A stretch of DNA of 64,000 nt, taken from NCBI RefSeq assembly GCF_037042905.1, contig NC_087248.1:13454001-13518000 (forward strand), in the 5' to 3' direction. This document shows positions 1,220-54,810 of the stretch, one piece after another. A model generated the notes under the pieces. The model ran no database searches and was not told the origin of the DNA. It saw nothing but the letters and a program-made list of their open reading frames with translations. Numbering within the stretch: position 1 is the stretch's first letter; every line of letters begins with the position of its first letter. Made by a program: the position numbers and the translations under genes. The stretch is from Lytechinus pictus (Eukaryota).

Positions 1220-3252
1220 TCAAACAAGCTTTAAATCATTGATTATCTTTACTGCTTGAGGTAGGAATGAATTTTTGTACCTAGAAGTACGGCAAGGTAT
1301 ACGGCAAAGAGGATCAGAATTTCTCAACTGACGGAAATTTGGCAAGGCATCTCTACGCTGTGGAAGCATGCGTGCATGCCTTGATTGTACAAAAGACCTG
1401 ACAAACATTGTAAGTAATTGAAAGCGTCTATCAGCAAGGGTTGGGATGTCCAAACACTCAAGGGCATGAAGATAATCAATATAGTTACCATAACCTAACA
1501 TTATACGACAGGCCCTCCTTTGTACACGTTCAATCTTATCCGATTGCTTGGCAGTTATGGAGGATGACCAAACTGGTGAGGCATATTCGACCAGTGGCCT
1601 AATATACATGCTATAAATAGCAACCAAATCACTCATTGGGACATTGTATCTCTTAAGTACACAAAGAATATACAATCGTTTTGATGCTTGTTTGATGACA
1701 TAATCCACATGTATATTCCATTTCATGTCGGATTGTAGGTAGACACCAAGTAGCTTAACAGACTCAATGGACTGAAGAACATCATCTCCAATACTGATCT
1801 CCGGCATGGGAGTAGGTTTCCTTAAAAAGGATATATGCATTATTTTACATTTCTCTGGTTTTGGGGTCATTTGCATATCAGAAGAACATTTGGAAATCAA
1901 AGATATATGTTCCTGTAAGGTAGAGGGTTGTGATTTGTATCTGATTTCAGCAACACTCAAATCATCCGCATATTTCCATCTTAGGGGAGTAGACGTAGCA
2001 ACGTCGTTGATCATGATAAAAAAAGAATGGGTCCGAGCTTTGTCCCTTGCGGGACGCCACAGGTAATTCTTGCTAAATTACTATGAATAGACCCAACTCG
2101 AACACTTTGAGATCTATTACTTAGATAGCTACATAGCAATACAATAATGTTGGGATTAATGCCAAGGTCAATCAATTTCTCAATTAATACATTGTGATTT
2201 ATATGGTCAAACGCCTTAGCATAATCAATAGTACATAAAGTGGCAACATGACCAGGTTTATCAGTACCTTTGAGGATTGAATCAATCAAGCTTATCATAT
2301 AGTGGGAGGTTGATGATCCTTTAATGTTACCAAACTGTTGCGTATCTATCTTATTTCTGATATCCTGATACAACCACTTGGTTAAGAATGACTCAAAAAC
2401 CTTAGCAAAGGTGGGGGTAAGAGATATTGGTCTTAAAAGATCAACAGAGTTACAGGGGAAAGTCTTGGGAATAGGGACAATGTCAGAGTTCTTCCAACAA
2501 TCGGGGAAGATGCCAGACTCCAGACTACTATTGAAGATCATAGCCAATGGTTCAGCTAATTCCGGGGCAAATTCAGTAATGAGTCTGACAGGTACATCAT
2601 CATGATGACAGGATTTAGAAGCATTGAGCTTGCGCAATTCTTGATGAACCTGATATGCTTCCACTCTAGGGGGTGGTTGTGATGCAGGTAAGAAAGACTG
2701 TAGAGTAGAGATGTCAAGCGGAGGTAGTTGACTACAAATACGAGCGAAATGGCCATTAATAAGATTAGCTTGATCGATAGGGCGCATTTCACAACCAGGA
2801 AGGGATGTAGCTCTTTTATTCATTCCAGTGATGCTACGAATTTGCTGATGCCAACTTTTCGGGTTGGATTTCCGTAAAATCATGACTTTCTGAGAATAGA
2901 AGTGATCCTTTTGCACTTGTACCTCACGTTTGACTCGATTGCGAAGATTCCTATAATGTGCCATCCTATTAGATTTGAAAGCACACTGCCTTTCCTTAAT
3001 TAGCGATAAGATGCGTTTAGTGATCCAAGGCTTATCCCGAGATCTGCGTTTGACATTAACTAAAGGGAAGTGTAGATGGAACATCCGAGAAAGAGAATCC
3101 TGGAAATCAGAAGCCATATCTTCGACGGTCGGGTGCTCGAGAAGGTAACTCCAGCTAGTAGACGTGATCTCCTCACCAAAAGTACGATATTGTCGATACC
3201 ATAATATTGTCGATACCATAATTTTCCTCTTGAAAATCGAAAAATTGATCAA
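1220..3252 (-). pseudogene. LINE ORF2 reverse transcriptase, frameshifted
   Basis: Frameshift in a T-run at ~2015-2025 between GPILFL and MIND...KYADD; no endonuclease domain present. Confidence 0.88.
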
Positions 3253-6078: not shown

Positions 6079-8790
6079 GATTGATTGATTGATTCATTTA
6101 TTTCCACACTTCATAAAAAGAACAATACAGAGTAAAGATGGTATTAAAAAATACAGTACAATATATTCCGATGCATAAAGAGAACATACACTACACAAAA
6201 CAATATACCAAAATATGAACAATACTTAAATCAGACAAGAAGATAAACAGTATATGTAAATGTGGGGGATCATTTAAAAAGTTAAAAACTTATAACATAA
6301 TCCCAATTTTGTCAATAAAAGTTTGAGTTTTGCAGAGAAAGACTAAAAAAAAAAAAAAAAAAAAAAAAATTGTAATTGAGGTAACTTAGTTTAGGAAATT
6401 AAAGTTTTTGTAGAAGAAATGTTTTAAGTTTATATTTAAATACATTAAGGGATAGAGAACTTTTGACATCTTCAGGGAGACTGTTCCAGAATACAGGACC
6501 ATTATGAATTATTGACTTTCGGGATAATGATAATTTCCCACATGATACACGGTAATCAGATTTTCTTCTAGTATCATAATTGTGAATATCAGAATTTTTA
6601 CAAAATAAAGAATCAAAATTTATTGGAAGTAATTTCTTATAGTATAAATACATAAAGATACCAAGATTGTAACTATATAATTCATACACAGGCAATATTT
6701 TAAACTTAAGAAAGAGTGGAGCAGTGTGAGCTCTGAAACTAGAATAAGATATCATTCTGATTACTCTTTTTTGTAAAACTAAAGTTCTATCTAATAAATA
6801 TTTATTTGAAGACCCCCAAACAATAATTCCATAATTGAGATATGACAAAATTAAAGTGTTATAAAGCATTAAGAGAATATTTTGTGGGACAAATTCACGT
6901 AATCTATTTAAAACACCTATATTTCTAGAAATGAGGGAGTTTATTTTGTTAACATGACTTTTCCATTTTAAATTATCATCAATGTGAATTCCAAGAAATT
7001 TTACACTCTCCACCCTTTCTACTTCAGTATCATTAATATATAATTTAACAGATTTTTTATCTACATTGTTTCTACTGATGATCATAAAATTTGTTTTCTG
7101 AATATTCAAAGCTAAATTATTAACAGAGAACCATTCCTGTACTTTATTAAGTTCAATATTCATATTTTGTTGTAAATAACCTATGTCACTGTGGCAAAAA
7201 AATATATTTGTGTCGTCAGCAAAAAGAACAAATTTTAATAAATTAGAACAGAGATGAAGATCATTAACATATATAAGGAAAAGAAGAGGACCGAGGATTG
7301 AACCCTGCGGTACGCCTATTGATACTTTCTTGAACGAAGAATGACATGAATTATAAAGAACACATTGCTTTCTATTACTTAAATAATTGTGTATTAATTT
7401 AAGGGAAATACCTCGTATTCCATAAAAAGATAATTTACTAAGCAATATGTCATGGTTAATACAATCAAACGCCTTTTTTAGATCAATGAACACTCCAAAC
7501 GTTATTTCGTTATTCTCATAAGCATTTATAATGTCATTTAAAGAATCTATCAGAGCATGAGATGTACAATGTTTTTCTCTAAAACCAAATTGTTTTTGAT
7601 AAAGTATATGATTATTGTTAAAATATGTAATTAGCCTAGTATAAATACATTTCTCCAGCATTTTGGAGAAACATGATAATAAGGAAATTGGTCTATAATT
7701 TGAGAAAACATTTTTTGAACCAGATTTATATACAGGAATAACTTGTGATATTTTACAACTATCAGGAAATATACCTTCTTGAATACATAAATTGAAAATA
7801 AAGCATAATGGTTTACATAAAATATGAATTGTCCTTTTTACAACAACATTTTCAACGCCATCAATTCCTGGGGCTTTTCCATTCTGTAAACAATTTGCAA
7901 TGTTAATAATTTCCTGTTCTGTAATTGGTATGAGAAATAAAGAACAAGGCAGGGTGTTTTTCAGGTAAAAACTATAATCAATATTGCCTCTTGCAATGTT
8001 GTTAGTGATAGTATGTCCAATATTGGTAAAATATTAGTTAAATGCAAGTGCAATGTCATTTTCATTTCTGATTTCTATTTCATTATACCTAAAAACTAAG
8101 TTATTATCAGAGGTTTCAGGTTTCTGTTTGTTTAATAAACCATTTATAACTTTCCATGTTTTGCAAAGATTGTTTTTTACTTTATTAAATTTAGAGTAAT
8201 AAAATTCTTGTTTAGTTTTTCTAACAAGACTCACATATTTATTCTTAAAAGATTTATATTTTGCCTTTTTAATATCCGTAGGTTTCTTTATGAAGTTTGC
8301 ATACAACCTGTTCTTCTTTCTATACATACGTTTGAGTGTAATATTAAACCAATCATTCTTTTGTTTTCGGCTTACTATTTCTTTTAATGGGAAACTAATT
8401 TCATATATTTCAAGAATAATTTTCATGAATTCATCATAGAGCAAGCTAGGGTCAGCAATATTGTGACTGTCATAAATACAAGAAAAGTCAAACTCTGATA
8501 TTCTTTGTAAGAACCTAAGGATGCCATCTTCAGTAATTTGCCGTTTATGAAATTTTTTACTCGACTTCGTTGGCAACGAATAATCAAAAATAGAAAATAT
8601 TGGATAATGATCAGAAACATCACAGATAACAGAACCATAATAAAGGTTACATGAGTTATTAACAAAAATATTATCAATTAAAGTTGACGAAGTTTGAGTA
8701 ATCCTGATGGGTAGACTTATTAGTGGGGAAAAAGAAAATGATGACATCATTTCAAGAAATTCATTAACATAATTCAATTGATCAATCTTT
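6079..8790 (-). mobile_element. 5'-truncated L2-group LINE (end of APE endonuclease plus RT)
   Basis: ORFs 8034..8777 (RITQTSSTLIDNIF, SDHYPIF) and 6399..7661 (DLKKAFD, GVPQGSILGPLLF, FADD) are in the same frame; stop at 8034-8036; YRPISLL in between; (TGAT)n tail at ~6079-6095. Confidence 0.9.
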
Positions 8791-9720: not shown

Positions 9721-11351
9721 AGTCTTGTCATTTTTATCATGGGCATCCCGTAAAACATCGTACAAGACTTAGTCCGTTTACCACTAAAATTCAATGAAAC
9801 CACCATTTATTTAGCTTTCAAAATGTACAGTATTTATTTTACAGTGTGCAGCATTGGCGATGTACAAACGGCATTTTTTAACCAAATAAATCCAGAATAG
9901 CTCCATCTTTTGAAAGCTTGATCTTCATAATTGTAAAGCCGTAGCCTTTCGTTCTCATAACATTTCAGCGTCTGCCCTTTTTCTGACGTTGCATTTATTT
10001 AAGTGGAAGCCATGGGACTGTAAGTATAATACAAGATGTATAGACAAAGAACCTTTAGACTCAAGTCTAAGAGATGCAAAAAAGAAAGAAAGAAAGAAAT
10101 CTAACACTTTTATATATGGATATATGCATGATGTAACTGGACTATTATACAAAAGAATCGACAGTCTCGTTTTAATAGCCTACAATACATGTTGGTTCAT
10201 CTTCCCAGGTAACCGAGTTTCATTCTCGTATGTCGACAATCAACAATCAATAAATGTAATTAAGTGCTCTTGCTATGGGCGGTGGAGTGAAATAACATGT
10301 CAATCACTTATAAGTGAACTCTCTTTTAGATTCATTGACCGGTTGTTTCATCGATCAATTGATTGATTCTATCAATCAGGTATACACATAACAATTATAG
10401 GATTTTGTGAGTCGACAAACTTCGACAAGCCAGTCCATGATGGCCGGTGTGGCTTTAATATTTTCGATTCAATAATAATAACAATATCATGAACTATCGT
10501 TCTAACTAAATCGAAGTAAATATTGACAAGCAGTTTGCAGCTACAAACTATGCCAAACAAGTCTTGAACACCAAGGTAGCAAGATGAGTAGAAAGAAAAA
10601 TAAATAAAAAGTAAATAAAGAAACAAAGAAAAAAAGACATATACATTTGTTAGAATATTATTAATAATATTAATTAATTTGATAAATATGGCTTTATAGT
10701 GTAAGTAGGTAAAGTTTGCTTCAACGGATGATAAGAGCTAAAATAAGCACATGCACGTACACAATAACATGATGCCCCTTGGCACACCCTCAACATACCT
10801 AGACAGGCCTCATTAACTAAAATTCACTACCACCTACTCATAAACGATGTTTGTTACCTTACAGCGCAGCGTGAGAGAATCTCATAACATTCAAAATTTA
10901 TCAATTTAACATAAAAATACCACATTCGATTGTTAACACGTTAGTAACCTTTTTCATCCAATGTGTACGACTGAGAAAAATTTACCTTTAAAAGAACGAA
11001 CTAACTTTATAAGGTCTTATCTAAAACAATCATGAAGTATATACATCTAAAAAGGTACCGTTAACATTATACAGTTTTACACATAGAAAGTACAGAACGG
11101 ATGTCATTTGAGAACTATACTTATATATCACGCACAGTAAGATGATATTGCTTATATTTAGAATTTCTAAGGCTGTCAGATAATTCAGGGGGTCAAGGTT
11201 CCGTAAAAGTTCGAGGATTACAAACACCTCTGTGGAATTGCTAAGTGCTTTGAAAAAAAAATTAATAACCAAAGCTGAATAATGATTAATAAAATAAAAT
11301 AATTCAATTGCCTTCATTCACTTGTGGAGAGACGGTGACGCTTTAGCAATA

Positions 11352-13421
11352 TTAGTAATTGACATAAAGCCCTTCATCATCAACTAATTCATCAGTTGGA
11401 TTTGCAATGTTGTTCTCATAGAGGTCTGTAAGACTCATACCACAATCCTTATCATGTTCCAGAATGTTGGGTTCTTCATTGAGTTTGCATCTGCGGGTTA
11501 GACCGAGATCTAGTCCTGGAGACCTGGGGTCATCATAGTCTGACTCTAAAACTCTAATTCTGTTCGTCTTTCTGCTCATATCCGGTTTTGAGTACAACAA
11601 ATCCATATCTGCGTCCGTTTGAGCGGCTTTCTTCAATCTCGCAGATGAAGAATTCCGTGGTATTTTGCCTGGTCTAACAGAAGCTGAAAATGATGCCTGT
11701 ACATGGGGTTGATCTTTTGGTGATGGACTTGGATGCTGGATTGATATCGCATGTGAATTCAATTGGTCTATATCGACATCCCCAGGAGCACCTTTGATAT
11801 CATCTACAGAACAATATACAGAATCCGGGCTATCAGGGTAAGCCTCAGAATCATACTTCGTGAACCCAATGGCACCCGAGAGATCCCCATCATTTGAAGT
11901 GGACTTTGAGGGTAGATGGCCAAAGCAGTGGCTCTCGGGTTCCCTCTGCTTGTGCACCAGCGCCTCATGATCTGTACGAAATGAACCGGACACCTTTACG
12001 TCCTGACTTTGCTGCAGATTTCCATGATCTTTTATAGCCTCAGAAGTGACAGCTCCTCGAATTATGGTGTTATGAGATCTATGTCGGGTCGATAACAAGT
12101 CTAAGTTCACCATACCACCAGATATGTCAGAATGTTGAGTGTTAACGAAAACCCCTGTTGAAGCCGTCGGTAGTGATTCGTGCACTGTTTTTCCAAGGCA
12201 GGGAAGATATTTTCTTAAAGCACGGTAAAAACAAGTGATAAAGCCAGTTACAATACAACATAATATCGAGAGGCCTAATGTAACCAAAACCCAAATAGGG
12301 ATTTTCCTTGCTTCGATGTCTCGATCGGAATTCTCGTCCACTACTTTGCTAACAGTTCTTTCTGTGGAAGTACTTCCGGTGTTTGATTCTACATCTTCAA
12401 GACTATTTCGGTTGGATACGTTTTTACATTTAGCATTCATGATTGCACAATTTGCGTTCCCTTCAGGTGTGTCAAATGTAGACAGTGAAACGTTGCACTC
12501 TTTTTCTTGGATAAAATTGCCAATGTTTCGTAAGAGAACTGTCTTATTTTTACTCGGCACACCTGGTCCACAAAATAAAGAAAGACGCCCTTCATGGACA
12601 AATGATACAGTGTTGTTCGGTGACAGTGGAATTAGAATACTTCCATTGGTGTACCAAAGAACATCAGCGTCAGTTTCTCCTTCCGGGCAACATTCAAAAA
12701 AAGAATGCAGACGGAGATCTTGGACGAAATGAAATGAGCAGGTATTATTGTTAGACTTGTCTTTATTATTAATGAGGCACACGCTTGGCATAACTCGACC
12801 ATTATGTACGTCTTCAATAGACGAGTAAACACTGAATATGTTGGTTGAGTTAAAATCTCCATCAATATTCATATCACTAGTCCCATACTCATATAGAACC
12901 TGATCCCCGACCAGCAGTTGAACTTGATCCCCGACGTTCACCTGCATCCATTCACAGGACATCTGCAATCTCCGGGTCTCTTGGTCGTAGAGTGTTGAGC
13001 AGACAGGTTCTGTGCTTTCGATGGTTATATTGAACGACGCAATGGTGCAAAGCTTTTGATCCTTGTGATGAATTTTAAGCACGTACTCTCCTGAATCGCT
13101 AGGTTCAGAAAAAGCGATCGACAAGTTGATCGTTCGTTCTCCTGCTACATTTGTCAACTTATAACGGTCCCTGTTGATAGTTTCTTTGTCGACATCATCG
13201 AGCAGTTGATTCTTCTCATCTACCCATTTTGCCCATACGATTGACTGATTCTCATTCAAGGGGTCCTCAAGAAGGAATTGTACAGAAACATTCCGTCCGT
13301 CTACGGCTCCTAATGAGCGTTCCTGCCTGGCACCACACAAAAATGATACATATTCGCACTGTCCAGCGTGGAAGATGCTTTCAAGAAGGACAATTACATA
13401 AATTATTGAAGTAATTGCCAT
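11352..13421 (-). CDS. Ig-superfamily type-I transmembrane receptor, paralog 1 (689 aa, intronless CDS)
   Basis: Signal peptide MAITSIIYVIVLLESIFHAGQC; V-like domain (QSIVW, RYKL, LSI...DSGEY); domain 2 PVC...MSCEW; TM IPIWVLVTLGLSILCCIVTGFITCFY; tail motifs SVYCSV, LYSKPDMSRKT, YDDPR, YENN, YVNY. Confidence 0.9.
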   Translation of the reverse strand: MAITSIIYVIVLLESIFHAGQCEYVSFLCGARQERSLGAVDGRNVSVQFLLEDPLNENQSIVWAKWVDEKNQLLDDVDKETINRDRYKLTNVAGERTINLSIAFSEPSDSGEYVLKIHHKDQKLCTIASFNITIESTEPVCSTLYDQETRRLQMSCEWMQVNVGDQVQLLVGDQVLYEYGTSDMNIDGDFNSTNIFSVYSSIEDVHNGRVMPSVCLINNKDKSNNNTCSFHFVQDLRLHSFFECCPEGETDADVLWYTNGSILIPLSPNNTVSFVHEGRLSLFCGPGVPSKNKTVLLRNIGNFIQEKECNVSLSTFDTPEGNANCAIMNAKCKNVSNRNSLEDVESNTGSTSTERTVSKVVDENSDRDIEARKIPIWVLVTLGLSILCCIVTGFITCFYRALRKYLPCLGKTVHESLPTASTGVFVNTQHSDISGGMVNLDLLSTRHRSHNTIIRGAVTSEAIKDHGNLQQSQDVKVSGSFRTDHEALVHKQREPESHCFGHLPSKSTSNDGDLSGAIGFTKYDSEAYPDSPDSVYCSVDDIKGAPGDVDIDQLNSHAISIQHPSPSPKDQPHVQASFSASVRPGKIPRNSSSARLKKAAQTDADMDLLYSKPDMSRKTNRIRVLESDYDDPRSPGLDLGLTRRCKLNEEPNILEHDKDCGMSLTDLYENNIANPTDELVDDEGLYVNY

Positions 13422-13861
13422 GTTGAATCGAAATGATTCCTCACATCAGGGTTCAATATTTTGCTTCTATGATCACATAAATCCTGATATGACTTCTTTC
13501 ATGAAAAACTTTAATTCCTGCACGAAGAAAAAAAAAACCTGGTTGATCGATGAAATAAACAGAATTGATATACAAGGAAATGATATGAAGTATCATATTG
13601 AACAGCAGAAAGGTTTAACAATGCAATAAATCTGTAACACGCAATGTCTTACAACTGAGTGGTTCGAATTGAAGATCGGTTGTAGTTATATCTCTCTTAT
13701 TACGAGAGAGAAATAAGAGATATCAATGATTTTATGATTGTTTGTATGCATGCATCAAAACTAGTCTCAGTTTCGTTAGTCCATAAATCAAATGAAGTGA
13801 CTTGATAATATGCGGAAAATTACATGGCATCACGAATCAATACCTTTTGTTTGTAGAATAT

Positions 13862-13874
13862 GAAAAGTGAAACC
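13862..13874 (+). promoter_or_regulatory. IRF-binding element (ISRE/IRF-E-like) upstream of paralog 1
   Basis: GAAAAGTGAAACC matches the IRF consensus, ~440 bp upstream of the ATG; short motif in AT-rich DNA. Confidence 0.25.
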
Positions 13875-14282
13875 AGTAATTAAAAATATGAAACAATTGC
13901 TAGTTAAGCACTTTGCATCAATATGTAAATGCTGTATATATAAATATATCATTTCCCTATTTCACTAGAGAAAATACTCTTGATCGCTTTAAAGCTTATA
14001 AAGGTGTATCGCTCCATTTTAGTTGTATTTAACAGTCTTTGTCATTTCATAAAATATAGCTGTACACGTACACATTTTGTGCTAGTTAATGAAACTTATC
14101 ATTTGTTCACAAAATATTTTAAAATGAAACCTCAAAACTTTGGGCTATCCACTACAGCCTTCAGAACAAAGGTTTAAATCTTCTCCCAACACATATACAA
14201 TTTTGTGATCCCATGCATGGTAGTTCTGTGTATATCAAGGTATTTCTGTTTGTAATTATTATTTGCCGTAAACCAGTTGACA

Positions 14283-14466
14283 NNNNNNNNNNNNNNNNNN
14301 NNNNNNNNNNNNNNNNNNNNNNNNNNNNNNNNNNNNNNNNNNNNNNNNNNNNNNNNNNNNNNNNNNNNNNNNNNNNNNNNNNNNNNNNNNNNNNNNNNNN
14401 NNNNNNNNNNNNNNNNNNNNNNNNNNNNNNNNNNNNNNNNNNNNNNNNNNNNNNNNNNNNNNNNNN
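14283..14466. other. Assembly gap (184 N)
   Basis: Run of N. Confidence 1.
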
Positions 14467-15977: not shown

Positions 15978-17948
15978 TCAAGTACTTAGAGCTGTAATCG
16001 CATGCAGGCTATCACCCTCTTCAGCGAGAGGTGCTTCTTTAGTTTCGTTGGCTTTGATTCTTTGAAAGAATTCTTCTCCAGGAACCCTTGGGTCGTCATA
16101 TTCAAACTCCTCAGATATGTTTGTCTTAGTCTTCCGACTTATATCAGCCTTTGCGTAGAGTTTGTCTCCATCCAAAATTAAATCGAACGACGATGTTGCC
16201 TCCGGTTTCAGGTTCAATGGATTGGAGTGATGTACATTTTGTTCAGTAGCGTGAAGCAAGATTTGGTCAGATCCCAAATGTGAAACCTCGATTCCCGTAC
16301 CTATTATATCCTTCTGGACATCATCAACTGTACAGTATGTATTGTCCGGATTTGTCGCTCCTTCGGTTGTTGAAAGGACAGCTATTGCGTTGTTGTGAAC
16401 GGTCTTAACCTCACCGAAACTGTTATTGCGATTCAGTAGAATAATGTTTTCGTCACCGGCATTTACTCGTCGGATGCCGTGTTTCTGATTCAACGCTGTC
16501 AACGTGCGCCGCTCGGGAAGTTCCGGAGGATTGTTTTGTCGGTTAGGGGATATCCTTGTCAGGTTATTTTTGATGCAACTGTTTACTTGTCGCTGATTGC
16601 CAGACTGTGGTTGTTCAGGGACTCTGTCACTTCTCGGCCGTGACAATGGGATTGAAAGGTTCATGCCAACAGAATCAGTGCTTTCGTTCTGGACTGCCAC
16701 CGTATCAGTGATGTGAATATGATTGTTCTTCTCATTCCGTTTTATGATGAGGTTTCTGTGACATTTGCTGAAGCAGCCACAAATGGATAATATTAATGTC
16801 ACTGTTGATATCACCACAACTGAATATAGCAATATATCCCTTTTAGTTGCTGGTTGCTGGGTTGCAAGTGGATTTGTTGGGGCGTTCACACTACTCCCAT
16901 TCCAATTATTTACATCACATGAGCTAGGACCACAGTACTTCAATATATTGGTGCCGTTCTCATGACACAATTTTTTGCATTTTAGCTTTTCTCGATTCTT
17001 AGTATCTTTTATTATCACAAGATAATGGCCTTTCTTTTCCCAAATGATAACATCAATTTGCTCGATATCAATCACAGGTACGTTGTTTGAATTACTAGAT
17101 GCAAGCAGGTTACATTGCGTATCAAAATAACACAACGAAAATTCTGAGTTTCTGCATATGCTTCGTCCAATAGCATCAGTTACAGATTGATTCTTACTTA
17201 TCAAACATGTTTGAAACGTAGTAAATCCACATTTTTGAGTCCTCTTCTCCCTGCCACTTAGTACAGAACATCCGGTTGGCACGCCATTCTGGTCAAATAT
17301 ATTTTGAACAGGAATGTGTGCGGTTAGTTTATTTGATAAATTAAAATTACCACCGAAATTCATCTCACTGGTTTCATACTCATACAGCACCTGATTACCT
17401 GCTACAAGTTGAGCCTGATCCCCTTTTCTCACCTGTAACCACTGACAAGACATTAGGAATTTACCACTGCTTGTATTGAAGAGCGTAGAACATACAGGTG
17501 GTGTACTTTCTATTGTTAGGTTCAGCTTTGCAAGAATACAAAGCGACTGAGAATCATGTTGAATCCTGATCACATGTTGTCCAGAATCACTTTCTTCAGT
17601 GAACACGATACCTATTTCTAACTGGGTCTCGTTAATCTCATCCAACTTGTAACGATTGACATAAAGGGATGAGTTGGTATAGCATTGCAAAGAATTATTC
17701 AGTAGTTTTTCACATCGCTGCACCACTTCTCTTTTTATCCACACAAGAGACTGGGGGCTTTTGACGGGATCTTGCAGATTGAATTTGAGAGAAATATTCT
17801 GCCCTTCAACCATCTTCTTTGACACTTGCTGATTCTGGTTACACCATAATGAATCGTCATTAGAAAAGGATGGTTGGATGAAGAATTCCACAGAACAAAG
17901 TAGAAAAAATATTGCCCTATGTTGAACTCCGATAGTCCGTCGAGACAT
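15978..17948 (-). CDS. Ig-superfamily TM receptor, paralog 2 (656 aa, intronless CDS)
   Basis: Signal peptide; LWCN...GQNISLKF...QSLVW...RYKL...DSGQH...SLC; PVC...MSCQW; TM ILLYSVVVISTVTLILSICGCF; tail NTYCTV, LYAKADISRKT, YDDPR. Confidence 0.9.
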   Translation of the reverse strand: MSRRTIGVQHRAIFFLLCSVEFFIQPSFSNDDSLWCNQNQQVSKKMVEGQNISLKFNLQDPVKSPQSLVWIKREVVQRCEKLLNNSLQCYTNSSLYVNRYKLDEINETQLEIGIVFTEESDSGQHVIRIQHDSQSLCILAKLNLTIESTPPVCSTLFNTSSGKFLMSCQWLQVRKGDQAQLVAGNQVLYEYETSEMNFGGNFNLSNKLTAHIPVQNIFDQNGVPTGCSVLSGREKRTQKCGFTTFQTCLISKNQSVTDAIGRSICRNSEFSLCYFDTQCNLLASSNSNNVPVIDIEQIDVIIWEKKGHYLVIIKDTKNREKLKCKKLCHENGTNILKYCGPSSCDVNNWNGSSVNAPTNPLATQQPATKRDILLYSVVVISTVTLILSICGCFSKCHRNLIIKRNEKNNHIHITDTVAVQNESTDSVGMNLSIPLSRPRSDRVPEQPQSGNQRQVNSCIKNNLTRISPNRQNNPPELPERRTLTALNQKHGIRRVNAGDENIILLNRNNSFGEVKTVHNNAIAVLSTTEGATNPDNTYCTVDDVQKDIIGTGIEVSHLGSDQILLHATEQNVHHSNPLNLKPEATSSFDLILDGDKLYAKADISRKTKTNISEEFEYDDPRVPGEEFFQRIKANETKEAPLAEEGDSLHAITALST

Positions 17949-19070: not shown

Positions 19071-20774
19071 CTACACAGATGTGTTCATATACAAGTCACT
19101 CTCAGTTGTTGATTCATCTGTTGGATTCGTTATGTTGTTGCCATAGATATGGTTTTCTTGATCGATCCTCGGGGCACGTGGATGGAGGCCATCTTCTGGA
19201 AAAAGAAGAAAGTCATCTTCAGGAAACGCTCCTCTACTCGCACCTCTCTGCGCAGATGTCGATTTCTTTGTTTTCTGGCTCAAGTCAGGTTTCGCGTAGA
19301 GTGCATCTAAGTTATGCTTTAGTAAATTTGTAGCCATCATTTCATCTCTAGATGTGGTCTCCGATTCCGATGAGGAACGTGGGAGCCCAACAGTAGAAGA
19401 TCCCTGGTTGTTATCGGCTGTCATTGCTAGTGCCCCTGTCTGATCGTCACCCATTGATGTCGAATCCCTGTGAAGACCCTGTTCCATATCCCTTCTTAAA
19501 ACATACCTTTTACTGAGGTTTCTGGTTAAACAACATTTCATGATGAAAGCACTAGCAACACACCCAAGTGCTAATGTTGATATTGCAGCCACTGCTATCT
19601 TAATGAATTGTTTTGTTGAATTCGTTGTTGGTTTTAGCACGCCAGTATTATTAGTGGTAGTAGGACTATATATACCGGTGGTAGGTTCTGCCAAATTGTT
19701 TCCAATATCGCTCGAAATCGAATTAGCATTTGAAAAATTCACCAGTAAAACTTTACATTGTTGGTCTGCTTTAAATTGGAAGAAAAGTTGCTGAAAGTTC
19801 AATTTGGAAGTTGAACATTCATTTTTAGCGTATTTTCTTATGTCAAAAAATGTCATATTAATAATGTTTGAATGCTGCTCTTCATTCAAAACACAGAAGG
19901 AAATCACACCATTTACAATTGTTGAATTGTAGTTTTCTGAAAAAGGAACAAGTGATTCATTGTTATAAACAAGCATAGTAGATCTGCTCTCTTCATTGGC
20001 GCAACATTTTAAGTTTTCACTAACATCAAGTCCGTTATACTTAGCTGTGACAAGGGGGAGGAATTTACATTCTTCTTTCCCCTTTCCATTTGTGTGTGAA
20101 ACAATGCATTTCTCTGGTAGGGGGATTTCATGAAGAATATCATCAAGGCCAATGTATGTACTAAAACGATGTGTTATATTGAAGGAGCCCTTGAAATTCG
20201 ATTCTTCAATCTGATGTTCAAAGATCATTTCATTGTCTACCTCAAAGTGTGCTCGATCCCCTTTGTTCATTTGCACCCATTGGCAAGACATCTGTAATCT
20301 TTTGTTTTCTTCGTCGAATTGTGTGACACATTTCGGACGTGGGATTTCGACTGTTATATTAAGCAGAAGAGCCGTGCAGAGTGACTGTGTACCGTGGTTA
20401 ACAGTTACTACATGGTGCCCTGAATCATTACTCTCAATGTATAGAAGAAACAAATCAAAAGTGTCGTTTGCAACTTCGACCAATCGGTAACGACTTACGT
20501 CAAGATCCCCGTCGTCTTGATCTAAAGACTTATTCCGTTGTTTAATCAACATTGATTCACCTTTTCTCCACACCAATGACTGAGTCCCGACTAATGGATC
20601 TTTCAAATAAAATTTCCTAGAGAAGTTTTGTCCACTCCAAACGTCCAAATCTTCATTCTGAGTTTTGCCACACCAAAATGGATCGTCATCAGAGACACTG
20701 GCGTGAAAAGTGGTCTGCATGACAATTAATGTCAAAAGCATTCTGCACGCTAAAAAGTATTTCGTTGGAAACAT
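19071..20774 (-). CDS. Ig-superfamily TM receptor, paralog 3 (ORF opens at 20822; likely start MFPTKY at 20774)
   Basis: MFPT start aligns with paralog 5; FWCG...GQNFS...QSLVW...RYRL...DSGHH...SLC; PKC...MSCQW; TM IAVAAISTLALGCVASAFIM; short tail with LYAKPDLSQKT, IYGNN, LYMNT. Confidence 0.88.
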   Translation of the reverse strand: MFPTKYFLACRMLLTLIVMQTTFHASVSDDDPFWCGKTQNEDLDVWSGQNFSRKFYLKDPLVGTQSLVWRKGESMLIKQRNKSLDQDDGDLDVSRYRLVEVANDTFDLFLLYIESNDSGHHVVTVNHGTQSLCTALLLNITVEIPRPKCVTQFDEENKRLQMSCQWVQMNKGDRAHFEVDNEMIFEHQIEESNFKGSFNITHRFSTYIGLDDILHEIPLPEKCIVSHTNGKGKEECKFLPLVTAKYNGLDVSENLKCCANEESRSTMLVYNNESLVPFSENYNSTIVNGVISFCVLNEEQHSNIINMTFFDIRKYAKNECSTSKLNFQQLFFQFKADQQCKVLLVNFSNANSISSDIGNNLAEPTTGIYSPTTTNNTGVLKPTTNSTKQFIKIAVAAISTLALGCVASAFIMKCCLTRNLSKRYVLRRDMEQGLHRDSTSMGDDQTGALAMTADNNQGSSTVGLPRSSSESETTSRDEMMATNLLKHNLDALYAKPDLSQKTKKSTSAQRGASRGAFPEDDFLLFPEDGLHPRAPRIDQENHIYGNNITNPTDESTTESDLYMNTSV

Positions 20775-23700
20775 GTTTGTAAAATATATGAACAATCCAG
20801 AATTCACTTGTAATGTGTACATCTAAGTAGAGCGCCAATACATAATAGCCGCATGAACAAGGGTAACCTTTCACGTGCAGCAAATAACAATAACACTATA
20901 TGGATTGTCGTTCTGTAGAAGGTAAGCCTTTGAGCAGACATTGGAGAAGCGCTAGACTTTGTTACCAAATACAAATGATATGTGGAGCACATCAGAGGAA
21001 ATCAGATTAAGATATGAACCTATAGAATGGGGAAGTATATGGGCGGAGCGTGGACCGATAGAGACGACCTACCTCTCCACCTTTCATCATTGGTTGAATG
21101 TTGAAATATATTTATCAATGCATATCAAAATAGATAACCTAATGTAAATTGGAAGCAATCAATTTTCTCAGGATTGATGATAAATATGCATCTCTCTAAT
21201 TTGATTTATCATCATAAACCAGTTATCATAATGATCTGATTGTGAAACCGAAGGTCATTATTTTCCGGTGTCATAATTTATTAAGCAGAGGCCATTTCCC
21301 ACGGTACTGACGTCTACAAAAATAAAGTGTTACATGAAATAATTAATATTATGTTAGAGGATTCGTTATAAGGTTGTTCCTTTCTTGTGATCACTCTGAT
21401 ACTTAAGCAAAATGTATACTTTGCTGCTGTTTTTTCAGGAATTTGACATGTTATGTAATCTATGGATTTTCGTGAGGAAATGAATTAAGATTGGAATTTG
21501 ACTTGAATAAAAATTGAATTGCAGTGTTCGTGAATATTTTCTGATTCTGGTTTGAAGAATTGATGTTAATATTGCATATGCTGTTAAAGATGACCGAATA
21601 TACCACCACACAGTCACATACTTTGTTCAACGATTTATCAATATACCCTTCCCAGCTGGTCATCATTTGTGAGAAAGCAGTCGGGCAACTCCATAAAAAT
21701 GTAATCTAACCACCTGGAAGTGGTCATTTCCAGAGATATTATTAGTTTGCATCTGTGTTATAGTTCGTGCGAAGAAACCACTGATTGCTCACGCGAATAA
21801 CCCTCTATCAATCGAAGTTTATATTTCTCCTCCTCATATAACAAGGAGAGAGGGAATTTTAATTATTTGTAAAAGAAAAAACACAAGGATTGCTTGTAGT
21901 AAAAAGGGATATAAAATGCAGCATCTGAAATGCACACGCATATTCCTTTTTCAACATATACACACACCCGTTCTCCCACTCTCTCTTCCTCACACACGCA
22001 TCCACTCGCAATCACCCTAACACCGTATACACCACACAAGCATACCGCCCTAACTTATAATTGCTTCGGGTATTATTCAAAATAAACCAAACTACCATTC
22101 GATGTTTTTTTAGATTTTGGAGCCGTAAATCATAAGGTTTTATAGTTGAAAGTTATATATTCATACTTCAATTCAATCTTTTCATGATACTTAATGCTTT
22201 TCTGTTATTAAGAGGTCACTCTTGTCCAAACAATGACAAACTGCACTACTAACAAAATAGGAAAAAGCACATGCAAAGAAATGAGACATGCTAGTAACGA
22301 CTAATTTTTTTTCCACAGATATTTCTTCTTTATCAATGTATAATAGTACGGAATATTTATAAGGCGCTTGATACGGGCTTTTCTAAGTGAACTGCTCTCT
22401 GCTATATTATAACTGGTCCCTTAATAAATTTGGTCTACTAATAAATTACATGTAAGTCCACCTAAATTTACCAATTCTCAAGTGGGTCATCATCTGTTGA
22501 AATGACAAGTTTTGAGCAGGGACTTAAATCGACCCACAAGCTTTATGTTTATAAACGCGTAAATCATTCCACAAAGAAGGATTAATTACATTGTTTATCC
22601 ATCTTATTTATTTAATACATTTTGAATTTGCATATTGATACGTTTTCAACTGCACATTGTAATGTTATGACTAAAAATGACATGTTTTGAGATGTCAATT
22701 AGCAATGCGGGGGTTCAAAGATGGTTTCGAACTATTCCATATATTATTCAAACACAAATTTAAACGCATTGCAGGCATCATTATAAATATACATTTAACG
22801 AATTTTAAATCGGTGATTCAATTGTATACAGTGATAGTTATTATTGAATGAATTTTTATTCAATAACTTATTGATTACCTTTTCCGTGATACAAATAGCA
22901 CGGGTTATTCATATTATGCAATTTCTTAAAGGAGTATTTCACACAAGGGCATGGCAATGTTTAATACGTTGCAGTAAAGTATTATAGAGTAATAAAACAT
23001 GTATGCGAATATAATGGTAAACATGAATATGCACACTAAGCTAGTTATGCAGTGAAAACGTATACAACAAATTTCCATGCACTAAGGGTACTAGTCTTGA
23101 GAAGAAAACCTTATTTATTATTTATCAAGAAAAAGTTATCAGGTTCGATACCCATTTCATGATACACACAAGTAATCATTTAAACATATATTTATTTATT
23201 TTTGATATTTGTACAGGGTGGCACACATCACCAACTTGGTGGTCTTCATTGTGGCCCTGTTAACAAAAAAATAAACAAATAATGTCACTAATGATAATAA
23301 TAGGCAAGTAATGAACCAAATACAATACAATAATAAACAATATGTACAGGCACAAAATGTATGCAAACATGTCATAAGAAAAAAATATTGGTATCCCTAG
23401 CAATTATGATCATTGGATAATCATTCAACTTTGACCCTTTGAATTGAATTTGTGAATTTTGAAGGTAGAACATACAAATACCATAATTAGAACGGAAAAT
23501 AAATCAAACATCAAGAGTGAGAAAATGATTACAAATCAACACATATATATTTAAACGCGTTTGTGCTTACAACTTTGCATCCTATTTAAGCTATTGTATA
23601 TCTCTTTAAAAACTAAAACAAATAAGCTTCGCCTCGGCCTTATAAAAGTTTTGCTTGCTCATGCAATCTTCCCAAATTATGCTTCCAGTAAGAAATTCGG

Positions 23701-23972: not shown

Positions 23973-26180
23973 TCAAAGAAAAGAAGAAGAATTCATGTAC
24001 AGATCAGCATCAAATGTAGGTTGGTTTATACGGTTGTCTCTATCACTGTCATCCGTGTGGCTCGTGAAGTCTTCGGTCGGTACCGATGCGTAGAGATGAT
24101 CATCAGATTGCGAAAGACTGTCTTGTGGACCGTCTCTAGTCATGGTAGTTGCATCAGTTGGAGTAATATCATGAACATGATGATCTACATGGTCGCAATA
24201 TTGTCTACTCTGTGGTACAGATTGAGACTCTTTCCCCGTGTTTCTAGTTTTCTTGGACATGTCTGGGTGAGCATACATGGCTTCCAACTCTCGTGCAGAT
24301 GGTTTCTGGTTTCCAACAGCTTTTTCAATGGGGGTTGGTGTTTTGTCAGGCGAAGGTAAGGGGTTGTCTTTGTCAACATCAAGACGATCCCCTTCGTTAT
24401 CTTCAGGTGATTGAAGTGGTCTCAGAATAGGCGAATCCTTTTGAGGTTGGTTTGTTCTCCCGATGATCCTGGTAGTGTTATCATATATTGAAGAATAAGC
24501 ACCGTCCAACTCTGGTATCATCGATACTAGATGGTCAGTAGAGTGCTTTGCAACATTGTCCCTTTTGCATGGGTCCCCTGCCCCCTTACCATCACCAGTG
24601 GTGTGAATGACTGAAACATTATTGGTAGACATGCATTTTCCTGGATATGACTCTTTCATGTCATTGGGGATAAGACGAATTTGAGAGTTTTCGAGATTTT
24701 GTAGCTTAGTCTTCATTCTATCTGGTTCTCGGATGTTTATGTCTAATGTCGATTGCTGATGAGAGACCGACTCATCGGTATCAATGTCCACGTCTTCTTG
24801 AGGTTGCTGCGATGAAAAGGTGATCGTGTCATGAGGTCTTGAATCATCAACGTCATCGTCTTCCCCTGAAGCTAAATACGCGAGTGTACACGTAGCATTT
24901 GACCTTTGTTCTCTTACCAGATATTTACCTTTCCGTTGAAAGTAATAGAAACATAACATGACAACAATAATTGTAATACTTAGGATATATCCAGGTGTTG
25001 CAATGGCTGCCAGTGGTATCAGCCTATCGGTCCCTACGTTCTTAGGATTTGTCGACTCTATCGGAGGGCTACCTTCACTGGTTGCGGGGATATGAATTTC
25101 TTTACTTGGCCGATCCGTTGTTGATTGTAAATCCATATTTGTTACATTCACGATAATGGTTTCACATCTTAGTTCACTTCTCGCATCGAGTGGATATTTG
25201 CTTTCGCTTGCAGATTTACCTGAGATAAAAAAGCGATCACGTTCAAACTTTGAGAAGTCTAAAATAATAATGTTATGGATAATTGGTTTCGCGGAATCAT
25301 TGCTTCCAAGACATACGAATGCAATATTGTTGCTGACATTGTGGAGTGATAACATAACGTAGCTAGCATTTTTCCACCATATCAATGGAGTACTTTCATT
25401 CTCAACGCAGCAATCAAGTCTAACCTGTCCCCCTCTGTTGTTCTCTACCATACTGCGCTGTGGAGTGACAAATGCGCACGTTTCTCCTATGTCGCCTATA
25501 GCATTGGCAACAACACAAACATAGTCATCGTTAACCATATCTTCAATACTGATATAAACACTGAATCCATTAGTGAGGTTGGGATTGTTATCCAGGTTTT
25601 CACCTGTAGATCTATCTTCAGCCAACAGTCGATTACCGGCTCGTAATTCTGCGTGGTGGTTACTGCTAATCTGTGTCCACTGACAGGACAGTTCAACCTT
25701 CGCTCTATGTTGGTCCAACAAAGAGGTACAATTGTTTTTGGTATCAATAACTGACAAGGTGAATATCAAGGCTGTACATTTTGTCATGCCTTCTTCATTT
25801 AGAATAATGATGTGTTGTCCAGAATCCTCTTGATGTGCAGATGCAATCAGGAGCTCCAAGGTACAGTTTGAGAATGACTTATTCAGCCTATAACGTGAAT
25901 TAACAGAGGACTCATTACTTGTACACTGCAGAGTGTTATTACAGGTCATACTCCATGATGCATGTGGTGCTATCCAATTCAGGGTTTGATTTTCAAGGAT
26001 AGGGCATTGAAGATTGAATGAAATAAAAACGTCTTGATGATTCAATACTTCGACCGATTCAAACTTGTATTTACAGTTTTCGCCAGTGTTTTCACTTAAT
26101 GAATAGATTCGAACAAAGGTATCTAGAATGATCAAAAGTAACAATTTATTTACTCTTGGAAAACGTTGTCTACCCTCCAT
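23973..26180 (-). CDS. Ig-superfamily TM receptor, paralog 4 (735 aa, most divergent)
   Basis: Signal peptide; QTLNW, RYRL, LLI...DSGQH, KC; LSCQW; DCC...IWW; TM LAAIATPGYILSITIIVVMLCFYYF; tail AYSSIYDN, MYAHPDMSKKT, LYASV, LYMNS. Confidence 0.88.
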   Translation of the reverse strand: MEGRQRFPRVNKLLLLIILDTFVRIYSLSENTGENCKYKFESVEVLNHQDVFISFNLQCPILENQTLNWIAPHASWSMTCNNTLQCTSNESSVNSRYRLNKSFSNCTLELLIASAHQEDSGQHIIILNEEGMTKCTALIFTLSVIDTKNNCTSLLDQHRAKVELSCQWTQISSNHHAELRAGNRLLAEDRSTGENLDNNPNLTNGFSVYISIEDMVNDDYVCVVANAIGDIGETCAFVTPQRSMVENNRGGQVRLDCCVENESTPLIWWKNASYVMLSLHNVSNNIAFVCLGSNDSAKPIIHNIIILDFSKFERDRFFISGKSASESKYPLDARSELRCETIIVNVTNMDLQSTTDRPSKEIHIPATSEGSPPIESTNPKNVGTDRLIPLAAIATPGYILSITIIVVMLCFYYFQRKGKYLVREQRSNATCTLAYLASGEDDDVDDSRPHDTITFSSQQPQEDVDIDTDESVSHQQSTLDINIREPDRMKTKLQNLENSQIRLIPNDMKESYPGKCMSTNNVSVIHTTGDGKGAGDPCKRDNVAKHSTDHLVSMIPELDGAYSSIYDNTTRIIGRTNQPQKDSPILRPLQSPEDNEGDRLDVDKDNPLPSPDKTPTPIEKAVGNQKPSARELEAMYAHPDMSKKTRNTGKESQSVPQSRQYCDHVDHHVHDITPTDATTMTRDGPQDSLSQSDDHLYASVPTEDFTSHTDDSDRDNRINQPTFDADLYMNSSSFL

Positions 26181-29314: not shown

Positions 29315-29778
29315 CTAATGTCCATCTTTTTGAGCTTGGACTTGCTTCCAGAATATTCTCTTGGGGCCTCTTGGGTCATCATATACTGTTTCTGCAAAGG
29401 ACTTTATTTTCCTGGTCTTACGACTCATATCCAGTTTGGCGTAAAACGGCCAGAGAAAACAGAATTGTTGTCTTTGACATGAAGTCCTGGTTATTGTTTC
29501 ACGAGAGGACTTGTCCGATGTTTTATCTGACAAGTACCATGAGTACTGTTTTATCTGACAGTTACTAGGTAACAGTGACTCTCAGCCAATCATTATCAAA
29601 GAAAGTTGTCAGACCTAACAAATTGTCAGACGAAAATATTGATGAAACGCTTCCGTGGTGATGTCTTCGGGCGATGTCTTCGTCGCATCTGCCGGCATGC
29701 TGACGGACGACGGACAAGTCTCTGCCACTGCATACTAAAAAGCGGTTTGCGCTCTTGAAAAGGTGTTGGAACGACATT
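29315..29778 (-). pseudogene. Decayed distal tail of paralog 5
   Basis: Aligns to 42140-42450 with indels and an insertion; encodes YAKLDMSRKT and YDDPR beyond the stop. Confidence 0.85.
29491..29655. mobile_element. ~165 bp MITE inserted in the former coding tail of paralog 5
   Basis: Absent at the homologous site in paralog 6 (gaagtcctggtgatg); TGG duplicated at 29488-29490 and 29656-29658; degenerate gtttca...tgaaac ends with internal ctgaca/tgtcag repeats. Confidence 0.8.
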
Positions 29779-53811: not shown

Positions 53812-54810
53812 TTAAATCCCGAGGGATTGTGAAGGAATAAGATTTGACGTTGCGTCCGATTTTATGTATGTGTCCCTGGCTTTGTCTGACTTCCAACGGC
53901 CATGTTGTGAAATCAGAAAGGGAGAAACTCGATTGTTACTAGCGGATGAAGCTCCACCCGACCGGAGACTGTGCAAACCGAAATTAGAGACGTCGGGAAC
54001 AAAGGGCTTCAACGCCTCCAGGACAATCTCGCGAGTTCTTGTGTAACTTAAACCTTGAGAAGTGGCGACTAGACCGCGTTTGGAACGAGCAAGCCTGCGA
54101 ATCACTGGTAGGTGAGAATGAGGAGGATCGCCTAAAGCTGCGAAATATCGCTCGGCTATAATGACGGGACAGGTCGGGTTGGATGTCCTAGCAATGGTAA
54201 CATCTCTGCCTTGGCGGAATTGATCGGTTTTAGAAGAGGGTAAGTGTAGGACTAGCCTGTCATGATGAAGAGTGCAGTCCTTCTTTCTTATCCTGCTAAG
54301 GTCGTCGAAGCGTAGGAATCCAGCATAAGAAATGAAGCATATAAACAAAATGCGTAGATCAGCTAAAGATGCATTGAGCTGACCGTGTGATGCGCGAAGA
54401 TGGGACAGGATTTCTGGTGTAACAGGCTCCTTACGACAAACAGGGGAAGAGTGAGTCCGGTTATACCCCTGCACTGCTGTTTTTACCATAGGGTCATCTG
54501 TGGGTGAAGGAAGGCCTGCGAGACCGTGCGCCCATTTCACTGACGCGACGAGGGAATCTGCTAGAATCTTGGCTCCGCTAACGGAAGACAGGTGGGAAAG
54601 GTATAGACAGAGGTGGTACGCTTGGACTGGAAATGTGGGTAGAGATTATTTTGGAGCTCGCCCACTGGACCCATTTGTCCCAACGGGATTTGTATTTTGA
54701 TGTGGTAGATGAAGCTTTGGCAGACATGAGTAGGGATGGAAGAACATCAGCGGCTAGGCTGCGTAGATGCGGATCGGAGATGGAGTCTTGCTTGGCGGAC
54801 CATGTTTCTG
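53812..54810 (-). pseudogene. Tyrosine recombinase of a DIRS/Ngaro-type retrotransposon, frameshifted in the N-terminal part
   Basis: GFLRFDDL, SKTDQ, GLHSLRSGGA, HGRWKS...RDTY give the catalytic R-K-HxxR-H-Y set; upstream KASSTTSKYKSRWDKW in another frame (shift ~54645); no RT/RNase H ORF in the window. Confidence 0.85.

Follow-up and report, generated by a model that had tools for sequence, protein, structure and literature searches.

Six clustered genes for predicted immunoglobulin-type receptors in Lytechinus pictus share conserved tyrosine-centered motifs in their cytoplasmic tails

A cluster of six receptor-like genes

The window analyzed here, a 64-kb stretch of the Lytechinus pictus genome (NC_087248.1, positions 13,454,001 to 13,518,000), harbors six paralogs, p1 to p6, all on the minus strand. 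Each is a single open reading frame (ORF) of 581-735 codons that encodes a signal peptide, an ectodomain of ~350-390 residues, one hydrophobic transmembrane (TM) helix as judged by hydropathy and a cytoplasmic tail of 150-320 residues. A sequence-only reading of positions 11352-11830, which correspond to p1 residues ~531-689 plus the stop codon, had proposed that these tails carry a combinatorial code of tyrosine motifs, and every motif string it quoted is present as quoted, including an out-of-frame remnant behind p5. The genes and their tail motifs, designated A to E, are arranged as follows.

11352-13421, minus strand: p1, 689 residues; single ORF with signal peptide, three predicted immunoglobulin (Ig)-like domains, TM segment and 287-residue tail (ORF list, AlphaFold2, hydropathy)
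12417-13334, minus strand: p1 ectodomain, three predicted tandem Ig-like beta-sandwich domains (about residues 30-335; AlphaFold2, structure matches)
12216-12302, minus strand: p1 TM segment, residues 374-402, core without charged residue (ORF list and hydropathy)
15978-17948, minus strand: p2, 656 residues; A at 16314-16343, B at 16125-16163, C at 16077-16103; D and E decayed
19071-20822, minus strand: p3, 583 residues; B at 19266-19304, D at 19113-19148, E at 19080-19097; lacks A and YDDP; C-terminus -TSV
23973-26180, minus strand: p4, 735 residues; A (GAYSSIYDN) at 24474-24503, B at 24243-24281, E at 23988-24005; lineage-specific HLYASVPT island
29779-31524, minus strand: p5, 581-residue ORF; A at 29824-29853; the ORF stops 15 codons past A
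29363-29446, minus strand: p5 remnant of B and C, out of frame, FYAKLDMSRKT...VYDDPRGP, downstream of the p5 stop
42140-44224, minus strand: p6, 694 residues; A at 42494-42523, B at 42236-42274, C at 42185-42211

AlphaFold2 modeling of p1 residues 21-373 on a 34-sequence ectodomain alignment yielded three beta-sandwich domains, with a predicted local distance difference test score of 76 and a predicted template-modeling score (pTM) of 0.70. All 500 counted matches in a PDB structure search had E values of 0.001 or below, and the 50 listed were Ig-domain proteins (titin Ig triplets, pIgR, CEA, nectin, CD2/CD58/CD48 and IgLON); a search of AlphaFold Database clusters returned generic Ig matches only. 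Pfam gave nothing above threshold for the ectodomain, with only I-set, V-set and 2B4 below it. As modeled, the family thus belongs to the type I receptors of the immunoglobulin superfamily (IgSF), with an Ig-like beta-sandwich ectodomain, a single TM segment and a cytoplasmic tail. For the tail, taken from motif A to the C-terminus in a 15-sequence alignment, modeling gave a pTM of 0.15 and hardly any secondary structure, predicting the disorder expected of a carrier of linear motifs.

The paralogs are widely diverged, with 23-29% identity to p1 over the whole protein and 23-30% among ectodomains, except for the recent duplicates p5 and p6. At 67% amino acid identity, p5 is a shortened copy of p6 that spans 29315-31524 when its decayed continuation is included, and tblastn of the window revealed no further copies beyond that continuation.

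Five conserved tail motifs and two fixed spacings

The motifs of the p1 tail, on which the conservation analysis was centered, lie as follows.

11793-11822, minus strand: motif A, SVYCSVDDIK (Y536); family consensus xxY[CS]S[VLI]D[DE][VI]
11562-11600, minus strand: motif B, LLYSKPDMSRKTN (Y610); Tyr, Asp and Lys invariant in tail alignment A3
11514-11540, minus strand: motif C, DYDDPRSPG (Y629); 19 residues past the motif B tyrosine
11388-11423, minus strand: motif D, LYENNIANPTDE (Y668); first YxN plus NPTDE
11355-11372, minus strand: motif E, GLYVNY (Y686); terminal YxN, 18 residues past the motif D tyrosine

Among the paralogs, motif A reads SVYCSV in p1, NTYCTV in p2, GAYSSI in p4, DTYCSI in p5 and DTYYSL in p6, and is lacking in p3. 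Motif B is kept in p1-p4 and p6 and is missing from the p5 ORF, where the remnant lies out of frame, while motif C (YDDPR) is found in p1, p2, p6 and the p5 remnant. YxN motifs occur in p1 (YENN and YVNY), p3 (YGNN and YMNT) and p4 (YMNS); p4 has in addition a YDN directly after motif A that had gone unlisted. Across the family, the motif B tyrosine (Y86 of the tail alignment) is invariant in 15 of 15 sequences and is the most invariant residue of that motif, each of the 11 full-length tails scanned in which motif E is kept contains LY[MVI]N, and motif D is Y[GESD]N in most tails (FGN in P0002, YGD in P0111). The C-termini of p3 (-TSV, 19074-19082) and p4 (-SFL, 23976-23984) both fit the form of class I PDZ ligands; unlike these ends, relatives from the second species share a C-terminal ..SVHS[FY].. 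extension past motif E.

Conservation was profiled by taking each 7-residue window of the p1 tail, finding its best ungapped BLOSUM62 match in each of 14 other tails (four window paralogs and ten relatives, p1's own ortholog excluded) and comparing it with 200 shuffles per tail. Five peaks emerged, at motif A (YCSVDDI, z = 17.5), B (LYSKPDMSRKT, 17.8), C (SDYDDPRSPG, 9.5), D (YENNIANPT, 5.2) and E (EGLYVN, 4.5), with |z| below 3 in all remaining windows. The sequence-only reading had staked its claim on motifs that are better conserved than the flanking tail, and this is clearly so; its proposal of tyrosine-centered linear motifs in different combinations per paralog is likewise borne out by this profile and by the family tables. 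In contrast, consensus matches within one tail carry little weight: a strict match to the immunoreceptor tyrosine-based inhibitory motif (ITIM) is expected 0.52 times per shuffled p1 tail (P = 0.41), and two YxN in p1 have P = 0.066 in the same shuffles. The signal beyond chance lies in positional conservation.

Codons inside the motifs differ synonymously among the paralogs (Ser AGC/AGT/TCC, Pro CCG/CCT/CCA, Arg AGA/CGG/CGA), which points to selection on the peptide rather than on the DNA. In view of these differences and of flanks at null level, we reject DNA-level conservation or gene conversion as the cause of the motifs.

The spacing of the motifs, which the sequence-only reading had not addressed, is itself conserved. 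Of the 13 listed sequences with both B and C, 11 have the two tyrosines 19 residues apart (20 in p6, 33 in P0018), and the D and E tyrosines lie 18 apart in all nine listed sequences with both; the other distances are looser, A to B being 71-83 residues in most cases (two fragments have 42 and 47) and C to D 25-40. The tail motifs are therefore organized as one single motif (A) and two pairs of fixed spacing (B-19-C and D-18-E). Further islands include a juxtamembrane motif, [DE]S[VL]EM[TS]..S, that lies ~30-45 residues past the TM segment in p2, p5, p6 and many relatives (variants DSVGMN, DSVEMS and DSVEMR; ESLEMV, ETIEMS and others) and that was not among the motifs first listed, as well as PGxDF[WFY] past motif C, NPTDE between D and E and, in the p4 lineage, [LF]Y[AS][SL]VPT. 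The earlier description of the tails as otherwise unalignable is thus roughly right but overlooked these islands and the rigid spacing.

Relatives, motif loss and the immunoreceptor analogy

A profile hidden Markov model of the six proteins retrieved 108 relatives among 1.8 billion representatives, and the tail motifs recur among these. Of the 30 whose source was looked up, 25 stem from ENA assemblies, two are Logan contigs and one is an old UniParc entry (P0018, UPI000222A274), and all four ENA relatives whose contigs were examined belong to one assembly, ERZ26222911, presumably the DNA of another echinoid. Each window paralog is predicted as one ORF running from signal peptide to stop, and the relatives were captured as single ORFs. 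Cluster look-ups of the relatives gave no names, returning only UPI000222A274 and two unrelated weak matches (nematode and fish); word-indexed protein searches with whole p1, with its tail (residues 525-689) or with alignment A1 yielded, besides p1 itself, only 2-4 proteins from a single ENA assembly; there was no named echinoderm protein among the matches listed in protein searches with the family, and a full-text literature search for the motif strings found no relevant paper.

In the ectodomain tree, p1 pairs with P0002, p2 with P0119, p3 with P0004 and p4 with P0111, with support of 100/100 or 100/99. This 1:1 pairing of p1-p4 with counterparts in another species indicates that the paralogs are older than the split of the two species. 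The contig of P0002 also holds P0007, a 328-residue fragment that shares a 90%-identity cluster with P0119, and the P0007 gene lies upstream of P0002 in the same orientation, which is the gene order of the window.

Motif sets vary even between such counterparts. Whereas p2 has A-B-C with D and E decayed, its ortholog P0119 has A-B-D-E and lacks C; in P0002, the p1 ortholog, the tyrosine of motif D is replaced by Phe; A and C are missing from p3, whereas all five motifs are found in its closest tail match P0034, as in the complete tail of P0012; and the p6 tail ends 18 residues past motif C, as in its closest tail match, P0022. Motif B is the sole motif never lost from intact long-tailed close relatives, A, C, D and E having been lost repeatedly and independently. 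Since orthologs differ in motif content, the "code" is better described as ongoing lineage-specific loss than as a designed set of combinations, and an ancestral A-B-C-D-E tail with repeated lineage-specific losses would be the simplest history of these sequences. The ancestral-type consensus reads Y[CS]S[VLI]DD for A, [LIM]YAKPDMSRKT for B, YDDPRxPGxDF for C, [IL]Y[GE]N[NS]..NPTDE for D and LY[MVI]N near the C-terminus for E.

More distant members depart from this plan. A deeper branch (P0045, P0058, P0026, P0046 and P0040; ERZ26222911) has up to ten tandem [VI]IY[QH]TL[DE]E[DE]K units as its tail, and many members have very short tails, at least one of them with a genuine stop codon. In the P0005/P0118 cluster (L002:628-1908; Logan SRR28370570 and SRR28370576), a protein of 426 residues with a three-Ig ectodomain and a TM segment that holds a His has a tail of ~15 residues, ...YRNADEYDVRKRD, followed by a genuine TAA stop on seven contigs.

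These data bear on the proposal, put forward in the sequence-only reading, that motif A is an ITIM recruiting SHP phosphatases and that the paralogs are paired inhibitory and activating receptors, with p3 activating-only. Several observations are in accord with such an immunoreceptor code: SVYCSV of p1 fits [SIVL]xYxx[IVL], and p1 is indeed the only one of the six paralogs to match the strict consensus at motif A; roughly half of the family carries S, T or I at -2, resembling an ITIM or an immunoreceptor tyrosine-based switch motif (ITSM); the tandem [VI]IY[QH]TL[DE]E repeats of P0045, P0058 and P0026 match the ITIM consensus well and far more closely than motif A; short-tailed members exist elsewhere, as in the P0005 cluster with its genuine stop codon; and the genes form a tandem cluster of diverged Ig ectodomains. 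Nevertheless, the identification of motif A as an ITIM does not hold up well. At the -2 position, which defines an ITIM, the family shows any of S, N, G, D, T, R or I, whereas +1 (C/S), +2 (S/T), +3 (V/L/I) and the acidic +4 and +5 positions are conserved, and the match in p1 is at chance level, as given above. The paired-receptor analogy fares no better: 1) the ectodomains, p5/p6 excepted, show the low identity already noted, in contrast to the near-identity typical of paired receptors; 2) none of the six window paralogs has a charged residue in its TM core; 3) no ITAM (tyrosine-based activation motif of immunoreceptors) was present in the window paralogs when it was looked for; 4) the window holds no intact short-tailed partner, p5 being a decaying duplicate of p6; and 5) motif sets are evolutionarily labile, as the differences between orthologs indicate. 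Taken together, these features make the paired-receptor reading weak, and we consider the immunoreceptor code as a whole unlikely; the activating-only role of p3 is speculation.

It might also be argued that the cluster is non-functional or decaying DNA in which the motifs resemble one another through recent duplication or gene conversion, not selection. The shortened p5, the lack of RNA reads in two runs, the dN/dS (ratio of nonsynonymous to synonymous substitution rates) of p5 vs. p6, at 0.56 for the ectodomain and 0.86 for TM segment and tail, and the transposon ORFs around the cluster would be compatible with this. However, five ORFs of 583-735 codons are still open at 23-30% mutual identity, p1-p4 each have an intact-looking counterpart in another species, and the motifs persist with synonymous changes while the flanks have diverged to null level. 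This explanation is already largely refuted by the profile, tree and codon evidence, and we regard it as extremely improbable.

The surroundings of the cluster are AT-rich and contain retrotransposon-like ORFs. On the minus strand, the translations of two ORFs (1220-3252 and 6399-8777) resemble reverse transcriptases of non-LTR retrotransposons, with YADD and FADD boxes visible, and are putatively assigned as such; a 242-residue minus-strand ORF at 53812-54540 has a terminal HxLRxxxA...H.RW-type pattern that suggests a candidate tyrosine-recombinase (Crypton/DIRS-like) element. Between p1 and p2, 184 N at 14283-14466 mark an assembly gap or mask.

A candidate phosphotyrosine docking scaffold

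We favor, as the reasonably probable reading, that the six genes encode type I Ig receptors whose disordered tails serve as phosphotyrosine docking scaffolds of the Kirrel, nephrin and A36 kind, rather than as ITIM/ITAM stop-go switches. Ligand engagement would lead Src- or Abl-type kinases to phosphorylate the motif tyrosines, on which SH2 proteins would then dock. The sequence [ILV]YAxP is the substrate optimum of the Abl kinase, YDxP suits Crk and Nck, and YxN is the Grb2 consensus; motifs D and E, with Asn at +2 of the tyrosine, would hence offer two Grb2-type sites. Motif A approximates YSSV, the Csk SH2 site of Cbp/PAG (PMC3492796), and several relatives carry YSSV itself at this position; recruitment of Csk here could provide negative feedback on Src kinases, with SHP-type phosphatases as the second candidate. 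Motifs B and C are two YxxP sites, at a spacing that may suit RasGAP's tandem SH2 domains, which bind doubly phosphorylated partners with tyrosines 18 (p190RhoGAP) or 19-28 residues apart (Dok) with a nanomolar dissociation constant (PMC10470053), and the N-terminal SH2 domain of RasGAP prefers Pro at +3 (PMC6938330). Two YxxP sites ~18-28 residues apart are found as YAKP-19-YDDP in 11 of the 13 listed sequences. Alternatively, Crk, Nck or Abl, the SH2 domains of which accept YxxP too, may dock on each site singly. The likely output would be Ras/Rho and actin control at cell contacts, as in adhesion receptors of the Kirrel/nephrin type. In line with the sequence-only reading, the strings agree with published or textbook SH2 preferences. 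Here YxN suits Grb2, YDDP is like the Nck-binding pYEDP of reovirus p14 (PMC9333988), and YxxP suits Crk, Abl, Nck or RasGAP.

Several known systems resemble this arrangement in part. Vaccinia A36, reovirus p14 and nephrin/Neph1 have, like the cluster receptors, disordered tails anchored in the membrane. In p14, Nck binds to pYEDP, 20 residues upstream of the pYVN site for Grb2, and this drives actin polymerization (PMC9333988); just as p14 HEYEDPYEPP (Nck) precedes TYVNI (Grb2), DYDDPRSPG of p1 precedes YENN and YVNY, although the distance from C to D in the cluster family is 25-40 residues, vs. 20 between the Nck and Grb2 sites of p14. Moreover, A36, p14 and nephrin have one Nck and one Grb2 site, whereas the sequences of the cluster family show two pairs of fixed spacing plus motif A. 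The authors of the p14 study were unable to find a host receptor whose signaling reaches actin through both Nck and Grb2 (PMC9333988). The YxxP spacing of p190RhoGAP (18) and Dok1 (19-28) is like that of B-19-C, a resemblance of consensus and spacing only, and these are cytosolic adaptors while the cluster proteins are receptors. Clustered IgSF paralogs with mixed tail tyrosine motifs, as seen here, are also known among FCRL, SLAM, Siglec, CEACAM and fish LITR proteins, and motif A is identical or nearly identical to YSSV, the Csk site of Cbp/PAG. The tail also shows weak feature-level similarity to the Csk-binding adaptors SCIMP, LIME and PAG: judged by language-model features, poxvirus A36R, SCIMP, LIME1 and PAG are among the named clusters closest to it, a weak lead with scores of only 0.67-0.76. 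In contrast to these vertebrate immune IgSF proteins and Csk adaptors, with which they share no sequence homology, the window paralogs lack conserved ITIM, ITSM, ITAM or charged-TM partners.

A more specific version of the scaffold reading, which we advance tentatively and consider rather doubtful, is a two-module bisphosphotyrosine receptor scaffold in which a tandem-SH2 protein, for example RasGAP, would bind B-19-C as its bidentate ligand, Grb2 would find a twin site in D-18-E and Csk would be recruited by motif A. If this is true, echinoderms would have built into one Ig receptor family a Ras/Rho and actin logic that in vertebrates is spread over Dok/p190, LAT and PAG, and evolutionary loss of modules would retune the output of each paralog.

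Alternatively, the motifs may be trafficking signals or phosphorylation-independent ligands, with A as an endocytic YxxPhi signal (Phi, a hydrophobic residue) plus acidic cluster and B-E as binding sites for a cytoskeletal or PDZ/WW-type partner. Motif A does fit YxxPhi followed by DD or DE, motif B is conserved far past pY+3 (PDMSRKTxK), PGxDF[WFY] past motif C resembles acidic-aromatic motifs of the adaptor-appendage type, and the ends of p3 and p4 are class I PDZ-like. Yet Pro or Asn occupies the position in B, C, D and E for which YxxPhi demands a hydrophobic residue, it is the tyrosine that is the most invariant residue of motif B, and the strings match experimentally defined phosphotyrosine sites (PMC9333988, PMC10470053, PMC3492796). 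We judge this alternative improbable, about as much so as the immunoreceptor code.

A possible link of the scaffold family to named proteins comes from echinoderm Ig-domain proteins specific to skeleton-forming cells (Khor & Ettensohn 2022, PMC8903837, supplement 7), here called the KirrelL-group. Among these, kirrelL is free of introns in every echinoderm examined, and skeleton-forming cells need it for cell-cell fusion. String comparison revealed strings like motif B in the tails from supplement 7: DALYAKPDK[MT][KR]KK in sea-star Hypp1164, the strings of which, CDALYAKPDKMKKKRR and CDALYAKPDKTRKKRH, may be compared with DALYAKPDLSQKTKK of p3; PIYAKP[MNDI]K[VIL][KR] in Kirrel2L; and ALYATLDKNK[RK]YP in KirrelL. 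The shared tail pattern [ILV]YA[KT][PL]xK..[KR] was found, and YAKPD occurs three times in 16 kb of sequence text vs. an estimated ~0.005 by chance. Such strings in the KirrelL-group suggest that motif B is an old echinoderm tail motif and is not private to the cluster. Other likenesses are 1) an echinoderm origin and an intron-free kirrelL coding region, alongside the predicted single ORF of each paralog; 2) a similar architecture of signal peptide, Ig-type run, TM segment ~400-700 residues in and tail of ~130-290 residues; and 3) YxN pairs (YENT...YENT in sea-star IgTM, YENV...IYVNR in crinoid kirrelL) and Yxx[LV]D-type motifs in the tails. There remain differences, in that Pfam finds no canonical I-set/C2-set above threshold in the cluster family, motifs A and C and the spacings of 19 and 18 residues are not evident in the KirrelL-group sequences compared, and the order of motifs differs, with an ITIM-like LVYA[DQ]LD lying C-terminal to the B-like motif.

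A number of points speak against the docking-scaffold reading or temper it. Phosphorylation and adaptor docking of the family members are predicted, and single-tail matches to loose SH2 consensuses, which are short and degenerate patterns, lie near chance expectation. Motif B is conserved over at least 11 residues, beyond the need of an SH2 domain, and may bind something else, just as the rigid spacing could instead mean one composite surface for some other partner, not two SH2 sites. The link to the KirrelL-group consists of short strings, and the tail dN/dS of p5 vs. p6 indicates relaxed constraint outside the motifs. Finally, p1 (window 10600-14200) drew no reads from two RNA-seq runs of 2026 on the same species, of which about a quarter each was read; short contigs of 43-193 nt from two older runs of uncertain type, with 95-99% identity and many single-nucleotide polymorphisms, match in patches inside and outside the p1 ORF.

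On the evidence given here, the cluster represents a new, unnamed family of a familiar kind, not a new signaling principle. Sea urchins have very large and mostly unnamed expansions of surface receptors, and the cluster offers a clean, testable case with five conserved motifs, two rigid pairs and natural "knock-out" paralogs and orthologs from which a defined module is missing in each case. Motif B's link to the KirrelL-group suggests a docking partner shared with a protein essential for skeletogenic cell fusion; on the tentative two-module reading given above, the YAKPxK core common to Kirrel2L and Hypp1164 (YATLDK in KirrelL) would be the sign of a docking interaction found throughout the phylum and bearing on KirrelL-driven cell fusion.

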